DNA of 64,000 nucleotides from Rhodosorus marinus CCMP1338 (taxonomy: Eukaryota > Plantae > Rhodophyta): NCBI GenBank assembly GCA_029953675.1, contig JAMWBK010000008.1, forward strand, positions 1,364,001-1,428,000, given 5' to 3'. The translations under genes and the position numbers were made by a program. Below are positions 2,649 to 62,753 of this stretch, piece by piece. Position 1 is the first letter of the stretch, and each line of letters starts with the position of its first letter. The notes under the pieces were generated by a model. It saw only the letters and a list, made by a program, of their open reading frames with translations. It was not told where the DNA came from and did no database searches.

Positions 2649-2848
2649 GCGTTGGGTGACCGGCGGACGCGACGGGGACAGCGGATCTTTATGTTAAGTT
2701 TTGGGTGTAAGAGAATTATATAGAATGAACGATAAATAAAGGACAATGGGGACAAGTTTAATTGGAATAGGGTATGCCAACAATGCGAATAGTAGAGACG
2801 TGGGGACGGGATAATCCCGTACTGCGCAATTTCCACTTCGTGTGCACG

Positions 2849-5415
2849 TTAGTTTCTGATGATTCGTCTTCGTCGAAGCAGCTTTCGGATTTTGAGACCC
2901 TCCAGCACAACCTTCGATTGAAACCGACCAGAAACGTCGGTTGGGTCAGCTTCTGCACCGGGTTTGCACACTGCGGAACATATGCACTTGAAGAACGCGG
3001 CCGCATCTTTGATATGCTGACCCTCTTTCTCTCTGCGTAGAAGGAACATGACAACAGTCAGTTGACTCGGTTCATCCAATGAGGAAATGCGGTGACAGGA
3101 AAAATACACAGCATTGAGAACCCGGTGCCATACCTCGCGTCAAGCTGCGTGGCGATTTCCAGGAGTAGCATCTTCGCGAATATGCATTGATCTGGATTCT
3201 CCTGAAATCCAACTGCTGCAAGCCTCCACATTGACGCGATCTCAGTCTCAGAGTGCTTCTCAGCAACCTGCGCATTTGTTCTACAAGCAGCGGCTGCTTC
3301 CTTCCAAGTTAGCTCCTCGCTAGTATCACGTAGGATCTCGTACGCGCTGCCCATACTGTTCTGGAATACGTGCTTCAAGTTTTCGCGAAGGGGTACAATT
3401 TCAACCGTTCTCTTGGTCCTAGAGCTGTCCATATACGCGGAAAGTAGCTTCTTCGATGCCTCTCGAGCGTCCTCTCCTTCCTCGACTGATACATGGAGGT
3501 GCTCGTCTCCAGTCAGAAAGTAGGTCAATCTCGGCGAGTTTGAGATCGTCGGATTCGTTGATGACAGCGTCTGCGATATTTCCCTGAAGAACGGAAAGAA
3601 TAGTGAGATTAAGTCCAGGATTCGCACTTTTAACGCGATGACAAGGCACGGCAGCTGTAGCCACAATTGTATAAAAGTCATCCACGGTGGCTTACCCTTC
3701 TCGCACTGAGAATATAGCCCTGGCGCCCTGGCTCGAAAAGGAAACGGCGCATCTCGGGGGACCGCGGTCCCTCTCAAGAAAGTAACCTTCTCCTTCACTG
3801 GCTGGCTTTGGAGCCGTCCCACCAGCTATCGAGTTAACCTGCATTTTCACCAAAGATGAGTCGGACGTGCTTTCGTGCATCCCGAAACTGGTCTCAGAGG
3901 TCTTTTCCCGCTCTCGAATCACTGTTGGAAACTCCAAGATGGAATACGCGAAGTTGTTCTGCAAGGAACCCTTGAATATGCCATCTCTGAACGGAAAAAT
4001 TGGAGAGTCTTGGTCGCCTCTGCACTTGCGAATCTCTTTGTGCGGGATCTCTACTGCCGAAACCGATGAGTTATCCTGCAACACCGCCAGGGCGGAGCTA
4101 TCATATTTCCGACGCTGTACAAAGTCAAAGGCTTTCACCTTGCTCGAATGGATGGGCAGCTCATAAACTCGCGATAGGTTGCTCGCATCCAACACGCTAA
4201 AATTGGGAAGAATAAATAAGATAACGGCGAAAGGCTTAAGACTCAAAAGCATTAACCACTCCCCAGCTTGCTTCAGCGAGGCTACAAGACAAAATCCGCT
4301 GAAAAACTCTCCAAACTTACCGAAACGTCGTCCCCGGTTCTCCAAAGGCGAGCACTGCATTTCCGTCCTTGGAATACGAGGCAAGCGTGGAGCGATGTAC
4401 GTATTGACTGGCAACCGGTGTCCTTGGTGACCTAGAGCTCCACACGTGCATAACTCCCGCAGCGTTCGTGCTAATCAGTTTCTCCGAATTCTTCGGGGAC
4501 CAGTCAATGTCTGCGGTGTTGAAGCTTCCCGGAGCACTGAAAATCGTGCACGGTCGTTCGGTGAGGCGCATGTCCCATATCCAAACATCGCGAGCATGAA
4601 TCGTCGCCAGGTAAGGTTCACTCGGACTCCAACGAGCCTTTCGAAACTTCCTCCCGTGATGATCTCTCAAAACCCTCTGGGAACAAAACCGCAATATGAG
4701 TTTTAGTCCAGGCAGACGAGCTCTTCATCAGCAGATCGCGAGCCAAAGGTCTGGGTGACTTGAACAACAAACCTTCGCGGATGGGTGGTCAGCGACGTAG
4801 GGCAGTTCTCTGAGGTCCCATATTTTGACGCTTGATTCACTGGCGCACGTCGCAAGGACAAACGAGCCCTCATCATGGCCATTGAACGAGACATCGGATG
4901 TGCCTACGAGAAAAAAAAGAAAAGATCAATTTTTTTTTTTTTGCTAGGTCGTATACCGAACTGAAGAAGATATCGCATTATGCAGTATTGGTCGTACCTT
5001 CATGGTTGATCGTGGACAACAACCGCTCCTCCTGCACGTTCCAGATGGATGTACGGTAATTGCTTCCGGAGGCCAATAACTCGTTTCGCCACGAAATGGA
5101 TTTCACGGAGGAATCCTTTGGCTCGATCTCATCCTTTAGGATCGACAGAGGCTTACCAACACCCAAATCAGCGCTATCAAATATCTGAATAACCGAACCT
5201 GGACATCCGAAAGCCACCTGCAGTTCATCCCCTGAGCTACACAGTTGAGAAGGATAGAAAGCCTCCTCCGAGTCAGGTTTCTTCACCAAATACGGAGCCT
5301 CGATCTCTCCACCAGACCCCTTGGTCAACAAAAGTTCTGCGCTCCGAGATAACCGCCAACGAGAACTCTTCAGATTCGACTGCGCTCGAGCAGCCAAGAG
5401 ATTCTCCACCGACAT
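2849..5415 (-). CDS. WD40-repeat protein, WDR59/SEA3 (GATOR2 subunit)-like; multi-exon, 3' end uncertain
   Basis: WD40 blades: FVLATCASESSVKIWDLR, ARWSPSEPYLATIHARDVWIWDMR, DIDWSPKNSEKLIS, HSSKVKAFDF. The C-terminal helical segment CRTNAQVAEKH...MWRLAA...FAKMLL...SMLCIF follows the WDR59 pattern as recalled; not database-checked. Confidence 0.6.
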
Positions 5416-6181: not shown

Positions 6182-7065
6182 ATGTCAGGATTGGGATCCA
6201 TTTTTCGACAGACGAAATCTGTTTTTAGGAGATGCTACAGTCTGAACGTTCATAATCTGAAGCGGAGATCGGTAATCAAACATCGAGGAAAACTATGCAA
6301 TGTTGAGGAAACTCCAGTTCTTCGGGCGAGGGGCAGAGGTGGTGGCTTGGTAACCCTCTCGCTCCGCGATCTGGTGAACGGCTCGAGATTTCAAGCGACT
6401 TTTAATGGAACTGAGAATGTTGAAGGTTTGTTTCCGAAAAGATTCTTTTGGTGCGATTCTGTTCTGAATCTCGTCTGAGAACCAGCAACTGCTCTTATTC
6501 AAGTTTCCGAGATTACCTGGAGTCACAAGCTCTTTCTCTACTCAGACAGTGATAACGTGGTGCTCATGGATCCCGAAACCTATGACCAGGTAATTCTTGG
6601 TTCCCATCATACCCGCTCCTGTTTGAGCATTATAAATCCCAATGGAGTGCATGAAACTTCCTGTTACATTAGGAGGAAGTTCCAGCTTCGAGAGTGCCCC
6701 ACGTAGAGTTTCTTGCTGCCGATATGAAGATCGACGTTGCTCATTGTGATGGTGAACTAGTCGAGGTACAGATCCCAAGCTATGTGGAGGTCGAAGTGGG
6801 GTAAGTCAGTATCGGGCACAGCCCTTCCGATACGCAGACTCTGGCTGATATATTCTGCTTGTCTTCTTATCCTACTCTCCTCGTCATCCACGAATAATAA
6901 AGGGATGCTCCTGAGATCGACAGGCAATCTACAGCATCTCTGAGCGGCAAACGTGCGATATTGAAGAACGGCGCCCCGCTTAACGTTCCCGCTTTTGTGA
7001 GGAACGGTGACAAAGTCCTGGTCAAGCTACTAGGTGCAAAGCCGGAGTATGTTAGCAGAGCTTGA
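6182..7065 (+). CDS. efp: Translation elongation factor P, mitochondrial-type; 4 exons
   Basis: Spliced product has a KOW domain (HRGKLCNVEE...ARGRGGG...LRDL.NG), a central OB segment (FLYSDSDNVVLMDPETYDQ) and a C-terminal OB segment (KRAILKNGAPLNVPAFVRNGDKVLV...EYVSRA stop). Arg/Ser-rich presequence MSGLGSIFRQTKSVFRRCYS. First intron 6426-6485. Confidence 0.9.
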
Positions 7066-7349
7066 TAACGGCCAATACCTCACGGACACCACCCACCCTG
7101 CTTGCAAAATCGTGTTTCAGCTCTGCGAGCTTCTGCAAATAGGTAAGGACTGCGAACCACAGCTTCTCCGCGAGGGAGCCATCGCTGGTAGGGCATTCCC
7201 AAACGATGTAGGACCCAAGCTGGGCAATCCTTCATAGGAAAGCAGTTCGTGTATCAACGGGAGAATGACCGAGTAGGTGCATCAGCACTGGGAAGATGCA
7301 CATTTGCTCACGGTTAGCTGACAGGCGCAGTGCATTCAAATCTTGAAGA

Positions 7350-8172
7350 CTACGCCCGGAACATTGAGAGACAAAATCCACCCAAGGCATTCTGGATTGC
7401 CTTAGTTTGTTCATTCCTTTGTAAATTAGTCCTTCGCCAGCAGTCTACTGTTAAGGTTGCGTCGCAACCACCTCCATGCCCCTCACCAGCACAAAGCACG
7501 AACACGCAGGCAAGACGCAGGTCCTGAGGGTTTTGAATGGTTGGGCTGTACAACTCGAAAACGTTGACCCGTACGGTTTTGCCAATGCCATTCAAGAAGA
7601 TGAACACCTAAAAGCGAATCCACCTCTGAACTTCCCATCTAACGGGTAGCAGAGGAGGGCATCGCACCTTGGTTCGAAGGACAGCTCTCATAACTTCCTC
7701 GCCATTTGGGCATGGGACGATACGAAGAGTCTTAAGACGATAACGAGGAGACTAGGACAAGTGTTGGGCAAGTTACGGAGGCAGCAACTCAGCAGATATG
7801 GCGACAACGGATCTTGTCAGCCGAGCACTTGAGAACGACAGACTGTTGAGCACGAACGGATCTGTTGACTAAGCGGACAGAAGTGAGTGCCAATTATTTT
7901 GGTAGGCCTTGGATGTCTCAGTAATGATGTACTTTGGCTTGATGTAGGCAACAACTCTTGCTCGTGAGAACGATAGCCTTGAGCCCCGATTGACATGATC
8001 TGAAACTTGCTTGTGTCAGTGTTCTCATGTCAGTATTTCTTGAGGACTGCGGGAATATGAGGTACATCAGGTATTCCTTTAGAGATCACTTCCGTGGAAA
8101 AGAATGATGCTGGCGTCCTTGGCACGGCTGCAACGAATTCGTCGCACCGTCAGGGGTATGGCGACTTTCATG
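7350..8172 (-). CDS. Hypothetical multi-exon protein; boundaries uncertain
   Basis: Exon-like segments bounded by AG/GT join in frame (RYRLKTLRIVPCPNGEEVMRAVLRTK|VFIFLNGIGKTVRVNVFELYSPTIQNPQDLRL). Head-to-head with the maturase gene. No family recognised. Confidence 0.3.
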
Positions 8173-8299
8173 CTGCTCCTTCGAGCTTCCACTTTCGGGC
8201 TTTGCTAAAGAAGAGGTTGTTTTTTTTTCGGTTTAGAAATTTTTGACCGCTCTATGTGCAGGCTCTCCAGCGATAGATTCGTCTCTGAGCCAGCCAGTT

Positions 8300-10972
8300 A
8301 TGATACGCAGGAGTATGCTCGCAATTTCTACTTCTGCTGCTGCGCTTGATCATTTCGGTTCTCGTCTTGTGTGCGTAGCTGAAAGTATCCGCTTCCTTTT
8401 TCCAGTAATCCGAAGTTTGACGATGACGCGGATCGCGCGTTGGGAGAAGCATGGGAGCTGAAGAGGTCACCTACGGGAAAATATCGAAATGTGCTCAAGT
8501 GGATTGGTCAACAACAAGTGCTTGACGCAGCAGTGCAAAGACTCAAGTCAAGGCAGCTTCTTCGACGAACATCTGGAACGGGTACTGCTATTGACAGGGA
8601 TTGGATGCGTAATGCTCCCCGAGAGATTCGCTCTGGACTGTACAAGTTCACGCCACCCGTAGTAAGTACCGTTCCAACTCCGATGGCAGAAGCAAGGGGT
8701 GGTGCGGCGGAAGAGGAAGTTGTTGGCGTCCACTTTGGGGACCTCGCCGTGCAGGAGGCAGTGTACCTTGCTCTTGAGAGAATCTATGAGGAATACTTTG
8801 TGGACGAGGTGAATTCGCGCCAATGTTTCAGCTGCTCTCCTTGAATCCTGCTGGGATGCTTATTGGAGTCTTCTCGCTTTGCATGTTGCAGCTTCATAGC
8901 TTTCGAGATGGACGAGGAGCACACTCCGCGATTCGACAGCTCAAATATCTTTGGAAGGGCTGCAAGTACTTTGTACACATAGAAATCGACAGTCTATATT
9001 CAAGTATGGACATGGACGTGTTAGGACGTCTCCTCCACGAGTTCATCGAAGACAAGAAATTTGTAGAGCACGTATGTACGGCTTTTGCCTTGTCACTTCC
9101 TGGAAGAAACCCAAAGAGAAATGTGCTGGCGCCAATCCTTTCCAATATTTATCTGCGAGAATTGGATATGGTGGTTAAGGTGAGCCATCGATCGAGACAT
9201 GTGAACGGGCGTGAGACGAGTTCTACCCGCGCATGTCGCCGCTAGTTGTCCTCCTTCTTATCACCGATCGTTCGGGTCACAACTTCCACAGGAGATGCAG
9301 GATGAGCACAATTGTGATAAGCTACGTCGTCGTCACCTCCTGAACGGTCTGCAAGATGCTCATGATCCCAACTATGTTAAGATCAACTATATCCGGTACG
9401 CTGATGATTTCCTGGTGGGTTTCTCGGGTCCGGATGAGATTCTTGAAGATCTTTTGCTGCGCATACGACGGTGCCTATCGAGAAGACTCAACCTTCGGTA
9501 CTCGGAGCCGAAGGTGGAACTTGCACATACAAAAGTGGTCAGTTTTCTCGGGTTTCTCATCGGCTTTGACCACCCGCGCACCATGGTAGGCGGTGATTCT
9601 TCAGCTTTTGTTTGAGCGCTGTTCGAACGGCAAACCATTGGGGGCCAGCAAGGCACGCTTCCTTGTACTCAAACTCAAATAGTTGCTTTCGTTTGCTTGA
9701 CGTCGACAGACGCAAGATGCTCATAGTGAAGACAAACGCATCCGGAAAGCTCGTGAGCAGGTTAGGGATAGATGGGAGAGCCTCCAGATGGCAATAGTCA
9801 GAAATGGCACGGATTGGCTGACAACCGGATTGAAGAAGGAACGCTTGAAATGGGCGTCCTATGCGGCAGCCAAGGTTGGATTCTTGAGGGCGCTTAAGAC
9901 CGAACTGAGGGACCTTCCACACGAGTTCATTCAGAAGTACGTTGACCATCATGAATTCTTGGAAACGATGCGCTCAGTTCATCTCGCATCGAACTCAAAA
10001 CCGATGCGATGCTTTTTGCCGTCTGTTTTGTCGAATTGAGCAGGTTCAGACATGGTCCCGAATATAGAAAACAGATAACCGACCGTATATTGGAGGAAAT
10101 TGCTTTGAATCGTATGCCGAGAGAGGTTTCAGAGTCGATTCGAAATCTCAAGGATGTCCTCATACGCAATACTACTCCCAAGCGTGAACATCCGAAGCTG
10201 AAGAGACTTCCGGAACCTGAACGTCCGGCAGAACCAGAGGGACAGTATTACACGCCTAGCATTCGGGTGAGGGACTTGTATTCGCCTTCTCTCTGTAGAA
10301 GCATATTCTCGTGTCTAAATCAAGTCTAACAAGTTCCCGGTGTTCCGTGAAAATCAGATCATGGCTCCTTTGGAGGCGATTGTCGAGAAACTGCGTTCGG
10401 AGTCAATCACTTACCATTTTTCTGACCAACCTTCTGCGTCGGATGTGGTCGATTACTTGGACGATGAAAGCATGATTCGATGGTATCGTGCTGTGGGCCG
10501 CCAACTTTTGGAATACTACGCTGTAGCGGATAATCTTGAGAAGGTACGAACACATGAGATCCAAGACCCAAACCCGACATGCTCTATAGCACCTTGAAGG
10601 TGTTTTCTCTTTTCCAGAGCCAGAGAAAAGGGCTTAAATTGGCGCTCCCTTCGTTTTCCGAAGGTGCAAAAGATCGTCCACTATACGCTGCGAAGGAGTG
10701 CGCAGAAAACGCTTGCAATCAAACATCGGACTACTCCGATGGCGGTCTCCTCGCGGCTAGGTGCTGACTTGACATTGCGCGACAGAGATGGAAGTGTCAT
10801 TACCAGTTTCCTATCGTACAACGAGGTGATGGGCGTGGATACAAGATTCAATCCTCTAATGGTTCACCCAGACCAGGCATTCTTTGCTCTCACGAATCGG
10901 TCAAGTTTCCTTATGAAGGTTGACGCCGAGATCCTGGCAAACCAGACGGAAGAAGAGCAACGAGGTTCTTAG
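8300..10972 (+). CDS. Nuclear-encoded group II intron maturase (reverse transcriptase domain + domain X), 8 predicted exons, about 674 aa
   Basis: Exons 8300-8370, 8406-8808, 8892-9179, 9292-9585, 9710-9936, 10044-10266, 10334-10543 and 10664-10972 total 2025 nt and all junctions are GT-AG and phase-compatible. Motifs: GDLAVQEAVYLALERIYEEYF, LHSFRDGRGAHSAI, IEID, LAPILSNIYLRELD, YIRYADDFLVG, FLGFLI, and domain X APLEAIVEKL...MIRWYRAVGRQLLEYYAVADNL...VHYTLRRSAQKTLAIKH. Confidence 0.9.
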
Positions 10973-11888
10973 CGTGTGAGCCGCCAGGACGGTGCACAGC
11001 GCTGGGAGATAATAATCAAATGTAAAACTAACGAAGCTAATGCGGAACTACGGTGCATAGCCGAAAACATCTCATCAACCAAGTCATCTCGTCCTTTTTT
11101 GAACCCGCTGGCAATCCGAGGACGCGTCTCAATTGCAAACGGGAGGAACACCACTAGACCCCTAGTAGCTAAAATGACAGCCTATCGATCTCTTGCGCGA
11201 CCGTCCACCCTGTCAGGAACGCAGCATCTTCCGATGGACCACGACCGATGAGAGCACAGCGCCTTCTTCAGCCGGGCGACAATGGGTCGGGGTGAGATGT
11301 TATTCAGAACTTAACCGAGCGCAAGGACGATGAATTTGTACAGCCCAACCGCCGTGGTGCCCACATAGCCTCCTCTCACGTCGAACAGAGCTCCTTGACG
11401 AGATAAAATATTATTAACTCCGCTTAGTCAGCCTCTGCTGTTTCAAATCTGCGCCATTCAAAGCGTATTTAGTATTTGCTCACACTACTCGTAGAAGAAC
11501 AGAACGACTCGCTCACGACGAATCCATTCCATCTGAAGTCATGCTACAGATCAACGTTCTCATGACTGCAAGTAGAGATAACGGCTTGCCCTGTCGCTTT
11601 GACGAAGTCTGTGCTGATGTTTTCATTGCTGAACGCGAACCTTCAAGCCTGTGATGAAACCTGTCCTTTTGGAGCTCGCTTTGATGTCAACGACGGTAAT
11701 CAACGCTCTGCTGTGAACCCAAAGACAGGGACTGAAGAAGCGAGTGGCTCTTCTTTCAGGGTGGTTTATAGACTAGGCGTCCAAGCTAAAGATCATGAGG
11801 CCAGAGGTCTTGACGACTTCATCGTCGTTGAGAGCGTACTAGCAGGAGTGATTTGATTTGGGAGTGGTGGTGTGATCGTATCGTCGGG

Positions 11889-12490
11889 ATGGAGAACAGT
11901 AAATCCCACAAGGCTCAAGATCCCAGCGTGTTACGCGGGGCCGCCTATGGTTCCTGTGCGGGGGTGCTTACGGGTATAGCAAACGCAATTATGATGTACA
12001 GGAACCCGAAGTTGCCCAACCCCGACATAGCGAAGACAAAATGGCAGAGACTCTGGGCTTTCCTGATGGTTGAAATCATTGCCAGAGGGGCTAGAGGATT
12101 AGTTGGTGGTGCAGGTTACGTGGCCGCGCTCAACAAGGCGAATCACCTTAGACCATCCGCGCCGCTCAGGGAGAACAGCGCGATAGCCGGATCGGTAGCT
12201 GGATTCGGGATTGTGGCTTTATTCAGCAGGTAAGAGGTTGCCTTTAAATCTGACCTGTGAGAATATCAAGTGCCCTCAAAACTAGTCACAAGTTCTGATC
12301 TCGCCTTTGATTGGGTTTCTTGTCATTGTGTTATAGAGGCTATGCCCTCCAGCTTGCTACTACCGCCATGGCATCCGCAGCTACGCTTGGTGCTCTTGGA
12401 TATGGAGGTGGATACGCTCAGGAACAAATGTATCGAAGACAGACAAGCGTAAAAAGGTTTGAACGAGGAGGCACATTTATGGACGGGTAA
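11889..12490 (+). CDS. Tim17/Tim22/Tim23-family membrane protein; 2 exons
   Basis: Gly/Ala-rich transmembrane segments (GAAYGSCAGVLTG; ARGLVGGAGYVAA) and the R...ENSAIAGSVAG pattern typical of the family. Donor gtaag near 12230; the second exon reads RGYALQLATTAMASAATLGALGYGGG. Confidence 0.6.
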
Positions 12491-13070
12491 GAAAGAACAC
12501 CGCATGCAACAAGAGAGCCAGGCACACGTGTCTCCTCCAGAGGAAAGAGCAACCACGATTTGGGGCCTGACATGCGAGTTGCACCTCTTGTTCCGCTGCT
12601 GAAATCCTAGGGGTTGGGTAGATGGTTCGGACATGAGGAAAAAGCGATATAGACTCGACTATTTGAACCCGGATAAGTCTAATCGTGGCGAAGGCGAAGG
12701 CTGAGGAAGTTCCGTAAGAGGAACAACACCACCACATAGGACCAGAACGAGAGGGAGAACGCGACTCGAGGCAGGGATAATGACACTGAAAGGGCAGGGG
12801 GTGATAGACAAAATGCGAAGAGCGGGACTATTCTCGTCAGTTAATTGGGCTTACCAGCATTGAGTTTTGCTAAATAGCGCTGGCGTGCAACGAAGGAAAA
12901 GAGTCATCAGCTCCGATCAAGTCAGGATGCGAGGTTAAATAGTTTCAAGTGAAAAGCTACTATTGAAGGTGACATGGAAGTCTCTTGTGTGATTTTGCAA
13001 ACGATCAATTTGATGTCGACGTCAGTCGGATAAAACCTACTTATCACTTCGCTTAGATTCCGGCGGGACT

Positions 13071-58913: not shown

Positions 58914-60002
58914 GCAATTTTTCGATCTCGTCTATTCTAAGCTCGAGCGAAGTTGAAGTCTCGAGTCACATGTGCTTTAGTTTCTCTGCTCGCCGACCCT
59001 CTAATGATACGTTGGGATGAAGAGCCTTCAGAACAGTGAAACAAAAACAAAAATATGTTTAGTATTTTGCAGACTTGATGGGTGCAGCGTGCTCCCTCCG
59101 TTGTCAAATCACGTATCGGCAACATGAGGCCCTGTTAAATACCTACTGGCCCGGCTCAGCGTAACTCAAACTGAATCGAGGCTAAGTAGCTGAAACCAAT
59201 CTGGTTGCTGATGGGCAGTCAAGAGATTTGATGAGGATAGAACCACAACAGGGTAATCGAGCACTTGGAATCGACTGACAGAAGTAGATGCTATGCAGTG
59301 GTGTGAGCAGGCGCTCCTCTGAGACAGCCTGAACGAAGCACGTTCAAAGGCAGGAACCAAAAATTATGAGGGCCGGCGACCATATCTGATACCGACCACT
59401 CTTATCGGTGTTGACATCCCGATACTACCCGCGCCTCGCCTTGAACAGTTCCCTAGTCGATTTGATTTCAAGAAAAAGTAGATTGGTTTTTTGTAGCAGT
59501 CGGTCGGCTCTCGTGTCGCCCAGGGATCAATCCCACCAGCGAACACCCTCAAACCGACCTTCATCCCGTCCATTTGTACAGCACTGCATATAGATGAGCC
59601 CCGAGGCTCTGGACGGGACAGTGGAGAGACGTCCTAGAGAAGCATTTCGTGAGCTGGAAATTTGCTCTCAATGCGACCGGATTCAGTTTCCTCTATAGCT
59701 TCGCTTCAGCGTATAGCAAACTTCAGTAGAACCAGACTCTAAATGATCGATTTCGATACGAAAATTTGGGGATTTCCGACTTGACAATAGTCTGCTCATT
59801 TGAGTTGAGGTTTCCATGTTGTTCTATAAGGTGTTGGGCAGGCGGGTAAGCACGCAGGTTCCTATTAGAATGGATCTGAGAGGGTCTGAGATGATCTGAC
59901 ATTTTGTAAGTTTGATAGAGACCTGAATGGAGCGAACTAGGATGGTGCAAGTTGGTTAGCTGAGGTGTATTTGTCAGTTGTACCCACTGGCTGGAGCAGG
60001 GG

Positions 60003-62753
60003 ATGACTGGGGACTCTGATTCGACCGGTGGAGAGGCCGAAAGGAAGCGAAGACGAGAGTCTGTGGTCGAGACGCTTCGTAAATCCCCCCCACAGAGAAG
60101 TCCGTTGTTAGAAGCTAACGGAGCTGCGTCTTCGAAGCAGTCATGTCCGGTGTGCATGGATAGGGTTGCCAGCTCCGATATCAACCAGCATTTGGATGAA
60201 TGTCTGGCTACGGCGGAATCCAAGGAGGCAGAGAAAGCGGACCTCCGGTCAGCAGTTGACATACTCAAAGAATCTTCAAACCGATTGGACGACGTGGTCT
60301 CTACAAGGAAGGAAAATCTGACCTGCCAGACGCATTTTGAGAAGTGGAAACCTACGTTCGCTCCAAAGGAGCATGATTCTCAGCACAACAGAGGACGACA
60401 TAGCGCGAAGGCAGTATATGTAGACAACGCCAACAAGGATGAGCCAGAAGAACAGGCGAGACCACTTCCAAATGCTCCATACTACGTGCGAGCGTTTCAA
60501 ATCGTGCTCGATTTCCTAGTCGAGACCCACGACCAGCTCCTGACAAACAACGACTGGAGGATCCACGGTGCTATCAACAACCTCGAAAGAGGTCCAAAGA
60601 AACTACTCGTCAGACTGTTCAATAGAAAACACAAATGGCTAAGGTCTTCCAATTTCTCATACAACGACATCGAAGGAGGAATTGAAAACGCGCTTGATCA
60701 GCTTGAGTCGGTAGATCTCATCGAACGCCTTGCACAAGAGAGGTGTGGTCAGACAGAATATGAGCTAATCCTTTCCAGTCTTCGAACGGAGGAAGTCAAG
60801 AAGATCGCACAGCCTTATGTCAGAAAGGTAGGGCCTTAAACGGCGGTTCTGGATGCTACCGAACCGTCTATTCTTTGGTAGAGTGTACTGACTTTACACT
60901 TCGACTGCAGGAAAAATCGATAACCAAGTCGATTGCCAGTGCGACGATTCTGCTACGTCTAGAAGACCATGTCTCCCGAACGATAGCCGGCACTACGGTG
61001 GGAGAATCCATGGCAAATCAGGTGCTGAAAGCTGCTGGGAGAGTGATTCGAATCAAAAACACGGCTCTGCAGCTTGTACAGAAGGCTCACGTTGTATTCT
61101 TCACACCAGACGATATGCATTCTCCGTCTTTGCTTCTCGCTGATCTCGGGAAGGTTTCATTTCCCGCGTATATCTGTTCGATGAGCCACCCAGTGTTTCG
61201 ATCATCGAAGGCGTACGAGTTGTACACCGATGCGAAGAAGCTGGAAGCTTCGCTTGATGAAGCTTTATTTGCTTCGGACTGGGAGCTCTCCGTCGAGATA
61301 GGAGACGAAGCTGAGCGACAGCTCAAGTCGAGTTTGGGTATTGAATCAAGCGACAAAGAAGATGACCCGGACTATCAAGTTGAGAGCGGCAACGATGATG
61401 ATGGGGGCGATGACCAACTGCGCCATCCGTTTCTTCGCTGTCTGACTTATCAGTGGATACTCGCCGGTATCGCGTGGCACTCGGTAGCTGCTCAAGAACG
61501 TCTCAGGGACTACAGAGGCGCCGTTACAAGGCTTCGTCTGATTCTTCAGTCTGGTTTGATACCGAAACGAAGGGGGAAAGTGTTGAATAGACTGACGATC
61601 GACCTCAAGCAGCACCTGGACGCCGGGCCGGAGGCGCTCGAATTGTGTCTTACAGCGCTGCGGCTCGACGAGGAGTGGATAATTCAGAGGGGGGAAAGAA
61701 TCCAGCTCGCGAAGCGTGCGAAGAGGATCTGGCAATCGCTTCACAAGGACAAAGCCATGCCGAAGGAGGTTCGGCAGCTGATAAACGCTGACAGCGCCGT
61801 CTGGATGAAAATTCCTCAGAGAACGATCGTAGGACGTCCTTTAGATGAGTACCGCAACAGAGGATCCGGGAGCGTCTTCATCGGCTACGATGGGGAGACA
61901 GTCACCGTTGAGGAGCTCTGCATTCAAAGCTATCGAGCCGAATCCAAGTGGAACGGCGTACATTGTGAAGGTGGAGAACATCAAAACTCCTAAACCTTGG
62001 GGCCACTGCCGCAGGAGCTCTAACAAGGGAGTTGTTGACTCACGGTTCTTTTGTTCAGGTTCTATAGTGAGAGCTCTGTTCCCGCTGTTGATGTGGGACG
62101 TGCTATTCTGCAACGTCCCGGATGTCTTTAGAACGCCTTTTCAAGACGCACCGTTGGACCTGGGAACGGAGGACTTTTACCTCTCACGAAGAGAGCTGAT
62201 CGATACGAGGCTTGATGTGCTGGTCGGTATGAGCCGTGACAATTTGGAGCAGGAAACCAGAGACGTCTGGGGGAGAGAGCAGGGGGTAAGATGCAGAGGT
62301 TTGACATGGAAGGATTCTCAAGTCCATCTTCCTGAGGTAATGAAACAGGCTCTCTACATAGAGACAACCAAAAGGTCTTGACGATCTAAAACGAGCGTTG
62401 GTGGCCCTGTTTCTGGTTTTTGTGTGGACCAGATGGCAAGGTGCATAGGGGGTAAAGCTTTGGCTGCTATGTTTCGTCTTCTCTGTGTGGACTACAGCTA
62501 CTGGAGTGGAGGAATGCCGGACCTATTCCTTTGGAGGAGTGAGGATTCCGTCGCAAAATTTGTGGAAGTGAAAGGCCCGAGGGATTCGTTAATGGAGCGA
62601 CAGCGCGCATGGATACATGAGCTGATGTCTTGCGGGGCGGATGTCGAGGTGTGTAAAGTAGTAGAGCGCGTGACGGAGAGGAACAAGGACGTCATTGTTG
62701 GTGACCATGACGCGTATGAGCTGGCAAGATTAGAGGATAAGTCCGTGGTTTGA
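60003..62753 (+). CDS. FAN1: Fanconi-associated nuclease 1; multi-exon
   Basis: UBZ4 finger CPVC...INQHLDEC, PYYVRAF, TPR region (RRGK.LNRL.IDL.QHL) and VRR-NUC domain GGMPDLFLW...FVEVKGPRDSLMERQRAW...VEVCKV. Confidence 0.92.

Follow-up and report, generated by a model that had tools for sequence, protein, structure and literature searches.

A nucleus-encoded, MatR-like group II intron maturase gene with a putative mitochondrial presequence in the red alga Rhodosorus marinus

Identification of the gene

A stretch of 64,000 bp of Rhodosorus marinus CCMP1338 DNA (GenBank assembly GCA_029953675.1, contig JAMWBK010000008.1, positions 1,364,001 to 1,428,000; this whole stretch is termed the window, and positions are given within it) was found to carry a plus-strand gene at 8104-10972 that encodes a group II intron reverse transcriptase (RT)/maturase of 685 amino acids (aa). 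With a probability of about 0.7, it is read here as a nuclear gene that derives from a mitochondrial MatR-like intron-encoded protein (IEP), has been domesticated by its host, and has a product that is imported into an organelle, most likely the mitochondrion, to splice in trans introns without an open reading frame (ORF) of their own. The original prediction of a free-standing, nucleus-encoded and domesticated maturase in a non-plant lineage is borne out by the nuclear neighbours of the gene, its spliced introns, a ratio of non-synonymous to synonymous substitution (dN/dS) of 0.14, the lack of a ribozyme and of an endonuclease (En) domain, and the decay of RT motif 4 (RT4). Of four findings set out beforehand as telling against that prediction, three were looked for (the lack of a spliced transcript, a dN/dS near 1 and an enclosing ribozyme), and the opposite was found each time.

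Gene model and exon-intron structure

Three-frame reading of 7800-11500 showed the motifs of a group II intron RT and of domain X scattered across frame-shifting ORF pieces with GT-AG introns between them, as had been proposed. A first splice model built on the original prediction gave a protein of 674 aa (Pfam RVT_1 4e-12, Intron_maturas2 1.3e-15). A database search identified a R. marinus MMETSP transcript protein (P0001) that is 89% identical to this model, and its cluster includes the full-length P0028 (684 aa, UniRef A0A7S2ZM31) and P0030 (MMETSP0011). The full-length transcript-derived proteins start MMPLSLARLQPIRLSVR...YDTQDDPKFDDD, with MMPLSLARLQ... as the N-terminus of P0001 and P0028. 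Since ATG 8104 and a further pair of 5' introns (8156-8236, 8313-8405) account for the N-termini of these two proteins, the true N-terminus is taken to be MMLASLARLQRIRRTVR. The corrected coding region has nine exons and eight GT-AG introns of 81-124 nucleotides (nt), and its 685-aa product is 89% identical to P0028 and collinear with it except for one codon; P0030 is collinear with the model as well. Seven introns and eight exons had been proposed, with a start at ATG 8300 (MIRRSML); this ATG lies in another frame of exon 2, and its frame runs into intron 2. Only ad hoc introns of 35 nt (8371-8405) or 47 nt (8369-8415) would join it to the RT frame, and these are ruled out by the 5' exons of P0001 and P0028. 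The out-of-frame ORF at 8300-8461 (+) (MIRRSMLAISTSAAAL...) overlaps exon 2 and intron 2 and is unsupported by transcript-derived proteins.

Exon 1 (8104-8155) encodes MMLASLARLQRIRRTVR, the beginning of the putative presequence, and matches the N-terminus of P0001 and P0028. It is followed by intron 1 (8156-8236; 81 nt, GTATGG...TTTAG, phase 1, with a T9 tract before the acceptor), which is seen at the protein level only (P0028). Alignment with P0028 also places exon 2 (8237-8312), which holds the out-of-frame ATG 8300, and intron 2 (8313-8405; 93 nt, GTATGC...TCCAG, phase 2), where the junction YDTQD/NPKF corresponds to YDTQDDPKF in P0028. Motifs RT0-RT2 (GKYRNVLKW, DLAVQEA) were mapped to exon 3 (8406-8808), which intron 3 (8809-8891; 83 nt, GTGAAT...TGCAG, placed by the P0028 alignment) separates from exon 4 (8892-9179). 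Motif alignment shows that exon 4 contains HSFRDGRGAHSA, the catalytic Asp of RT3 in IEID, and a degenerate RT4 (PGRNPKRNVLAPILSNIYL) in which PQG is replaced by PKR.

A nucleotide transcript from a related strain (L006) aligns as separate blocks whose breaks coincide exactly with introns 5-8; it keeps intron 4 and extends into the 3' untranslated region (UTR), which reaches at least to 11143 (10973-11143, 81% identity). Intron 4 (9180-9291; 112 nt) shows 83.9% nucleotide identity to this transcript, compared with 93% in the flanking exons. Together with the splice model, this complementary DNA (cDNA) gives exon 5 (9292-9585), with RT5 (YIRYADDFLVG) at 9388-9420 and RT7 (SFLGFLIG); intron 5 (9586-9709; 124 nt); exon 6 (9710-9936), with the first half of a long helical linker; intron 6 (9937-10043; 107 nt, phase 2); exon 7 (10044-10266), with the second half of the linker, a low-complexity Pro/Glu loop and then ...YYTPSIR; intron 7 (10267-10357; 91 nt); exon 8 (10358-10543), where domain X starts and WYRAVGRQLLEYYAVADN lies at 10481-10534; intron 8 (10544-10663; 120 nt); and exon 9 (10664-10972), with the remainder of domain X, TLAIKHR, a short C-terminal tail and the stop codon. 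The linker halves agree with the predicted structure, and the domain X boundaries with Pfam.

Intron 7 is assigned an end at 10357 rather than 10333 because the transcripts read ...YYTPSIR/IMAPL.... Two of the three junctions originally quoted stand, YFVDE/LHSFRDGRG (intron 8809-8891) and ADNLEK/VQKIVHY (intron 10544-10663), while the third, SIR/FPVF, which uses the acceptor at 10333, is ruled out by the cDNA. The two in-frame AG acceptors of this intron are 24 nt apart, and the cDNA takes the distal one; the proximal one would insert FPVFRENQ and might serve as a minor alternative acceptor.

In the related-strain transcripts, intron 4 is retained in L006 and P0031 and intron 6 in P0001, and P0029 begins within intron 6. 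Such intron-retaining isoforms yield truncated reading frames. Splicing of the maturase gene seems often to be incomplete in MMETSP assemblies, which could reflect regulation.

Domains, motifs and predicted fold

The corrected protein matches Pfam RVT_1 (4.1e-12) and Intron_maturas2 (7.3e-16), and its best sequence match in the PDB, where other group II RTs are matched too, is LtrA (1.8e-20), so that the gene is considered to encode a genuine group II RT/maturase. The RT (fingers/palm) domain occupies aa 157-361 (8746-9555, a span that covers introns 3 and 4) and domain X (maturase/thumb) aa 519-620 (10258-10774, covering introns 7 and 8). Between RT7 and domain X lies a helical linker of ~140 aa (aa 372-512, 9710-10239), which spacing, alignment and predicted structure mark as MatR-like and which is termed the long linker below. 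An AlphaFold (AF2) model of P0028, obtained with an alignment of 46 sequences, had a predicted local distance difference test (pLDDT) score of 84 and a predicted template modelling (pTM) score of 0.74. Residues 1-44 are disordered in this model, the RT domain and domain X are well folded, and long helices at 367-489 are followed by a disordered Pro/Glu loop. The best PDB fold match was intron-bound LtrA (8h2h_D; E 1.1e-14, template modelling (TM) scores 0.50/0.57), and the Foldseek top 30 were mostly group II RTs.

RT motifs 0-7 were located, and alignment with mitochondrial relatives showed that RPL of RT1 is lost and PQG of RT4 is replaced by PKR. Compared with these relatives, the insertion between RT4 and RT5 is shortened and an N-terminal extension is present. 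A C-terminal DNA-binding/HNH endonuclease (D/En) region was not detected: no HNH pattern and no PF21368 (found in relatives) occur in the protein, which ends 112 aa after the X motif. Both Rhodosorus sequences retain YADD and the Asp of motif 3.

An orthologue of 710 aa with 44% identity was identified in the cluster P0002/P0032 (P0032, MMETSP Transcript_1865). It has FAED in place of YADD and EKE in place of PQG and falls below Pfam RVT_1 detection, yet its domain X scores 58 bits, equal to that of the Rhodosorus protein. Identity between the two is spread evenly over RT domain, linker and domain X (42-51%) and is lowest at the N-terminus (23%). The functions needed for mobility are thus assessed as degenerate and domain X as conserved. 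RT activity is probably dispensable, because neither orthologue has kept PQG and P0032 carries FAED at the position of YADD. In maturases (LtrA, MatK/MatR), it is typical for the RT fold to be conserved even when catalysis is not, since the fold binds intron RNA.

Relationship to mitochondrial maturases

A profile of P0028 and P0032 was used in a HMMER search against 1.84 billion cluster representatives (standing for about 15 billion proteins), and only two orthologous clusters at 50% identity were found, that of Rhodosorus and P0002/P0032. The next tier of matches (1e-85 to 1e-45) aligned without a break from RT5 through domain X. The spacing from YADD to the X motif is 268 aa here and 255-300 aa in these relatives, compared with ~140 aa in canonical IEPs. 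The named members of this long-linker tier are mitochondrial: MatR of Silene and Sciadopitys, a Pellia maturase and a pair of Coleochaete scutata IEPs, of which one clusters with 'maturase R'; cox1- and atp1-intron ORFs on mitochondrial contigs also belong to it. Two members are nuclear, Selaginella XP_024524942 (P0098) and P0095. Two further sequences, P0096 and P0103, were suspected to be nMAT3/4-like and proved to be mitochondrial atp1-intron ORFs, and the genome context of P0151, P0192 and P0113 consisted of uninformative metagenome contigs. On these comparisons the Rhodosorus protein is grouped with those mitochondrial maturases that form a MatR-like 'long-linker' subfamily, and a mitochondrial ancestry is indicated because its nearest non-orthologous relatives are mitochondrion-encoded IEPs with the same spacing.

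Neighbour-joining (NJ) trees, built without named nMAT1-4 sequences, placed the red-algal sequences within the long-linker clade. With 200 bootstraps, the red clade was recovered in 100% of replicates and no sister group exceeded 18%. A word-indexed search for plant nMAT sequences, run with an alignment of 17 long-linker proteins, yielded no plant sequences; most matches were bacterial or metagenomic IEPs.

P0095 (L008 5315-7426, Logan SRR33208241) is encoded by a single uninterrupted ORF of the long-linker type; it has no En domain, and its N-terminus is an acidic repeat. It appears to be a nuclear copy of the subfamily, since SLC35F and mTERF genes flank it.

A different origin has to be weighed, in which the gene would be an orthologue of an older nuclear maturase of green plants (for example of the nMAT3/4-matR superfamily or of the Selaginella nuclear copy) or would have been acquired horizontally. 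Some 48% of the NJ replicates place the red clade as sister to groups that include the nuclear copies P0095 and P0098, and matR and nMAT3/4 are placed together in superfamily SF10-11-17-28 (PMC10012718), to which the long-linker clade appears to correspond. However, the pairing with nuclear copies is probably due to long-branch attraction, since all of these copies are on long branches, and no single sister relationship rises above 18%. The red-algal profile scores the Coleochaete mitochondrial IEPs (6.8e-85) far ahead of Selaginella P0098 (3.6e-54), the plant nMAT donors have been traced to land-plant mitochondrial paralogues (PMC3927076), and the nuclear genome of Porphyridium was found to contain no IEP homologue (Kim et al. 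2022, PMC8742464). With only two clusters among the representatives searched, common descent with the plant genes or horizontal acquisition is regarded as unlikely, while still deserving serious consideration. A transfer independent of the plant nMATs is considered likely from the literature on the plant donors and from the very narrow distribution of the orthogroup, with support for any sister group in the NJ tree at 18% or less.

Nuclear setting and selection

The other ORFs of the window match Sec5, FAN1 (two domains), a C2H2 zinc finger protein, WS/DGAT, saccharopine dehydrogenase and a flavodoxin/FAD reductase, and the neighbourhood can be classed as ordinary eukaryotic nuclear DNA. No mitochondrial gene fragments flanking the maturase gene were seen among these matches. 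The gene is present as a single copy within the window, and its guanine-cytosine content (overall, GC, and at third codon positions, GC3) and codon usage are like those of its neighbours (r = 0.74). No Rfam group II intron RNA family was detected at gathering scores across the 64 kb, and none at E<=10 in 6500-12500, in keeping with what had been noted from the letters of the sequence. The protein is therefore considered IEP-derived rather than intron-encoded.

In comparison with the related-strain cDNA (412 codons), dN/dS was 0.14 and dS 0.305, with similar values across RT domain, linker and domain X. Identity at the three codon positions was 0.94/0.97/0.82, and the retained intron (84%) and the 3' UTR (81%) diverge at the level of third positions. 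By these measures the gene is judged to have stayed under purifying selection.

The P0032 transcript contig (L001) bears a second, downstream ORF at 2702-3352 that is Tim17/22/23-family-like (Pfam 5e-5, below the family cut-off). Its best tblastn match in the whole window (E 1e-4) lies at 11877-12074, directly downstream of the maturase gene and on the same strand, where the adjoining gene at 11853-12233 (+) is weakly similar to it (blastp 6e-8). This suggests that a maturase gene and one encoding a putative membrane protein of the mitochondrial import family have kept their microsynteny. As the match to the Tim17-like ORF adjoins the maturase gene in both, orthology of the Rhodosorus and P0032 loci is further supported.

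Two other neighbours are probably intron-split genes. Upstream, at 3058-5415 (-), WD40/beta-propeller ORF fragments with weak Aladin/THOC3-like matches were found, and at 59723-61993 (+) FAN1 HTH and FAN1 TPR domains on adjacent ORFs probably belong to one gene for Fanconi-associated nuclease 1.

N-terminus, destination and proposed role

The N-termini of the three orthologues are rich in Arg and Lys, poor in acidic residues and amphipathic, with the first acidic residue at position 18, 29 or 39. In Rhodosorus, a strongly amphipathic 11-mer is present, and the first 18 aa include five R/K and one D/E. The N-terminus is the fastest-evolving segment in the orthologue comparison. It fits a putative mitochondrial presequence, through which import may be proposed. 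The presequence first quoted for this gene was an artefact of the ATG 8300 start; the real N-terminus, MMLASLARLQRIRRTVR, is likewise Arg-rich, acid-poor and amphipathic and would fit a mitochondrial one. An aromatic residue close to the N-terminus is usual in red-algal transit peptides. Such a residue is absent from both Rhodosorus sequences.

Mitochondrial genomes of Stylonematophyceae, including R. marinus, are reported to be minicircular and to contain 'only a handful of introns', none of them with an ORF (Lee et al. 2023, PMC10250338). In R. marinus, nad5 is split over two minicircles, with transcript evidence for trans-splicing (PMC10250338); maturases are unmentioned in that paper, and its supplements are silent on both maturases and intron type. 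A single cox3 intron is reported in Stylonematophyceae mitogenomes (van Beveren et al. 2022, PMC8995046), and nMAT1 of Arabidopsis acts on the trans-spliced nad1 intron 1 (PMC3927076). As a nucleus-encoded maturase of the mitochondrial type that bears a putative presequence, the Rhodosorus protein is the prime candidate for the missing trans-acting factor, a part that nMAT1-4 play in Arabidopsis.

In the proposed sequence of events, the ancestor would be the RT/maturase ORF of a mitochondrial group II intron that moved to the nucleus of a Rhodosorus-type (Stylonematophyceae) alga. What the sequence shows is that the gene has shed both the ribozyme around it and the DNA-binding/endonuclease domain, has gained eight spliceosomal introns, host-like codon usage and an N-terminal extension, and has remained under purifying selection. 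The 685-aa protein would be made in the cytosol and imported by means of its Arg-rich presequence, with the mitochondrion as the likeliest destination. There, the RT fingers/palm, the helical linker and domain X (thumb) would form an RNA-binding scaffold for folding the remaining ORF-less minicircle introns and activating them in trans, the cox3 intron and the split nad5 being plausible targets. A trans-acting role in splicing is thus plausible, and the gene offers a concrete candidate for the splicing of both on the maturase-less minicircles of Stylonematophyceae.

Several points weigh against this reading of the gene as an imported splicing factor. Both the group II nature of the Rhodosorus organellar introns and their maturase-less state rest on the cited papers. 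Exons 1-4 have support at the protein level only, through collinearity with the related strain. With YADD and the motif 3 Asp in place, the Rhodosorus protein may have some polymerase activity. Finally, composition cannot tell its N-terminal peptide from a plastid transit peptide.

This last point is one of those that speak for a plastid destination, or import into both organelles, in which case the same domesticated protein would serve plastid group II introns, which are common in Proteorhodophytina plastomes. Arabidopsis nMAT4 is possibly dual-localised (PMC3927076), and introns are present in Stylonematophyceae plastomes (PMC8995046). However, all close relatives of the protein are mitochondrial IEPs, and plastid introns of these algae often retain IEPs of their own, whereas the mitogenome has none. 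As the aromatic residue usual in red-algal transit peptides is also missing from both Rhodosorus sequences, plastid or dual import is a doubtful alternative of fairly low probability.

Retention of YADD and the motif 3 Asp would also suit a new function, in which the protein still works as an RT in the organelle, or serves there as a general chaperone of RNA, with a possible part in retroprocessing or in the maintenance of minicircles and not in intron-specific splicing. The RT region is conserved as strongly as domain X (42-51% to P0032), and the mitogenomes of the host lineage are unusual, minicircular and intron-poor. Against this stand the loss of PQG in motif 4 and of RPL in RT1, the FAED of P0032 and its failure to reach Pfam RVT_1 detection, and the fact that maturases such as LtrA and MatK/MatR typically keep the RT fold without catalysis. 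A new function of this kind is considered improbable. A bolder version, which may be offered as speculation of very slight probability, is that the imported Rhodosorus protein is still an active RT that, besides splicing, drove a retroprocessing that contributed to the near-complete loss of mitochondrial introns, and perhaps to the origin or maintenance of the single-gene minicircles typical of Stylonematophyceae.

Although R. marinus is reportedly rich in nuclear copies of mitochondrial DNA (PMC10250338), the view that the locus is a decaying copy or pseudogene left by the ORF of a mitochondrial intron, or a nuclear group II intron that still moves, can practically be dismissed: the splicing of the eight spliceosomal introns in cDNA and the dN/dS of 0.14 are enough to refute it for practical purposes, a full-length ORF persists in both strains and in the orthologue with 44% identity, ribozyme and En domain are lacking, and the gene is single-copy, host-like in codon usage and free of flanking mitochondrial gene fragments.

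Comparison with known systems

In the literature searched, nuclear group II maturases are treated as a feature of land plants, with the exception of one passing mention of Euglena (bioRxiv 10.1101/2021.09.24.461685), and no report of a red-algal nuclear maturase was found. The Rhodosorus proteins are annotated in UniProt merely as 'Reverse transcriptase domain-containing protein'. The novelty assumed in the original prediction nevertheless turned out to be larger than warranted, since transfers in land plants are recurrent (PMC3927076) and a nuclear maturase had been noted in Euglena. Land-plant nuclear maturases arose through repeated transfers from mitochondrion to nucleus, according to Guo & Mower 2013 as summarised in PMC3927076, and Selaginella XP_024524942, Physcomitrium mat-nuc1 and P0095 show that such transfer recurs.

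The Rhodosorus gene resembles those of plant nMAT1-4 (At-nMat1a/1b/2a/2b of Arabidopsis) in that they are free-standing nuclear genes from mitochondrial group II RT/maturases, with an N-terminal organelle presequence (putative in Rhodosorus), a conserved domain X, and an RT that is degenerate and/or an En domain that is lost or inactive. The plant proteins are trans-acting factors for mitochondrial introns that lack ORFs, some of them trans-spliced (PMC3927076), and the Rhodosorus protein would have a corresponding role. It differs in that its host is a red alga and in that it is of the long-linker MatR-like type, while nMAT1/2 fall with family F03 (mat-Mpo1). The proteins nMAT3/4 are placed with matR in superfamily SF10-11-17-28 (PMC10012718). 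As in type I plant nMATs, En is absent; unlike in these, YADD is retained.

By profile score and NJ clustering, MatR (mat-nad1i728 of seed plants) and the Coleochaete and liverwort mitochondrial IEPs belong to the same subfamily, and they share the ~270 aa from YADD to X and a helical linker of the KxxEKRRRxK type. MatR also resembles the Rhodosorus protein in its missing En domain and decayed RT motifs. MatR and its algal relatives are, however, encoded within mitochondrial group II introns, whereas the Rhodosorus gene is nuclear and split by spliceosomal introns, and its product has a putative presequence and a shortened RT4-RT5 insertion. The nuclear copies P0098 of Selaginella and P0095 are likewise long-linker and En-less, with mutated PQG/YADD, but they come from other lineages and P0095 is uninterrupted. 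LtrA of the Lactococcus Ll.LtrB intron is the best solved-structure match in sequence and fold and provides a structural model for the grip of RT domain and domain X on intron RNA, although it is bacterial, intron-encoded and catalytically active, possesses D/En and is without the 140-aa linker.

Outside plants, the putative nuclear maturase of Euglena gracilis (EG_transcript_10014; bioRxiv 10.1101/2021.09.24.461685) is a precedent, noted in passing in a transcriptome; it has a presumed plastid target and belongs to an unrelated lineage. A red-algal nuclear maturase under purifying selection would show that evolution can repeat the transfer of maturases to the nucleus, and the Rhodosorus gene is accordingly best described as a non-plant nuclear maturase of an already known type in a new lineage.

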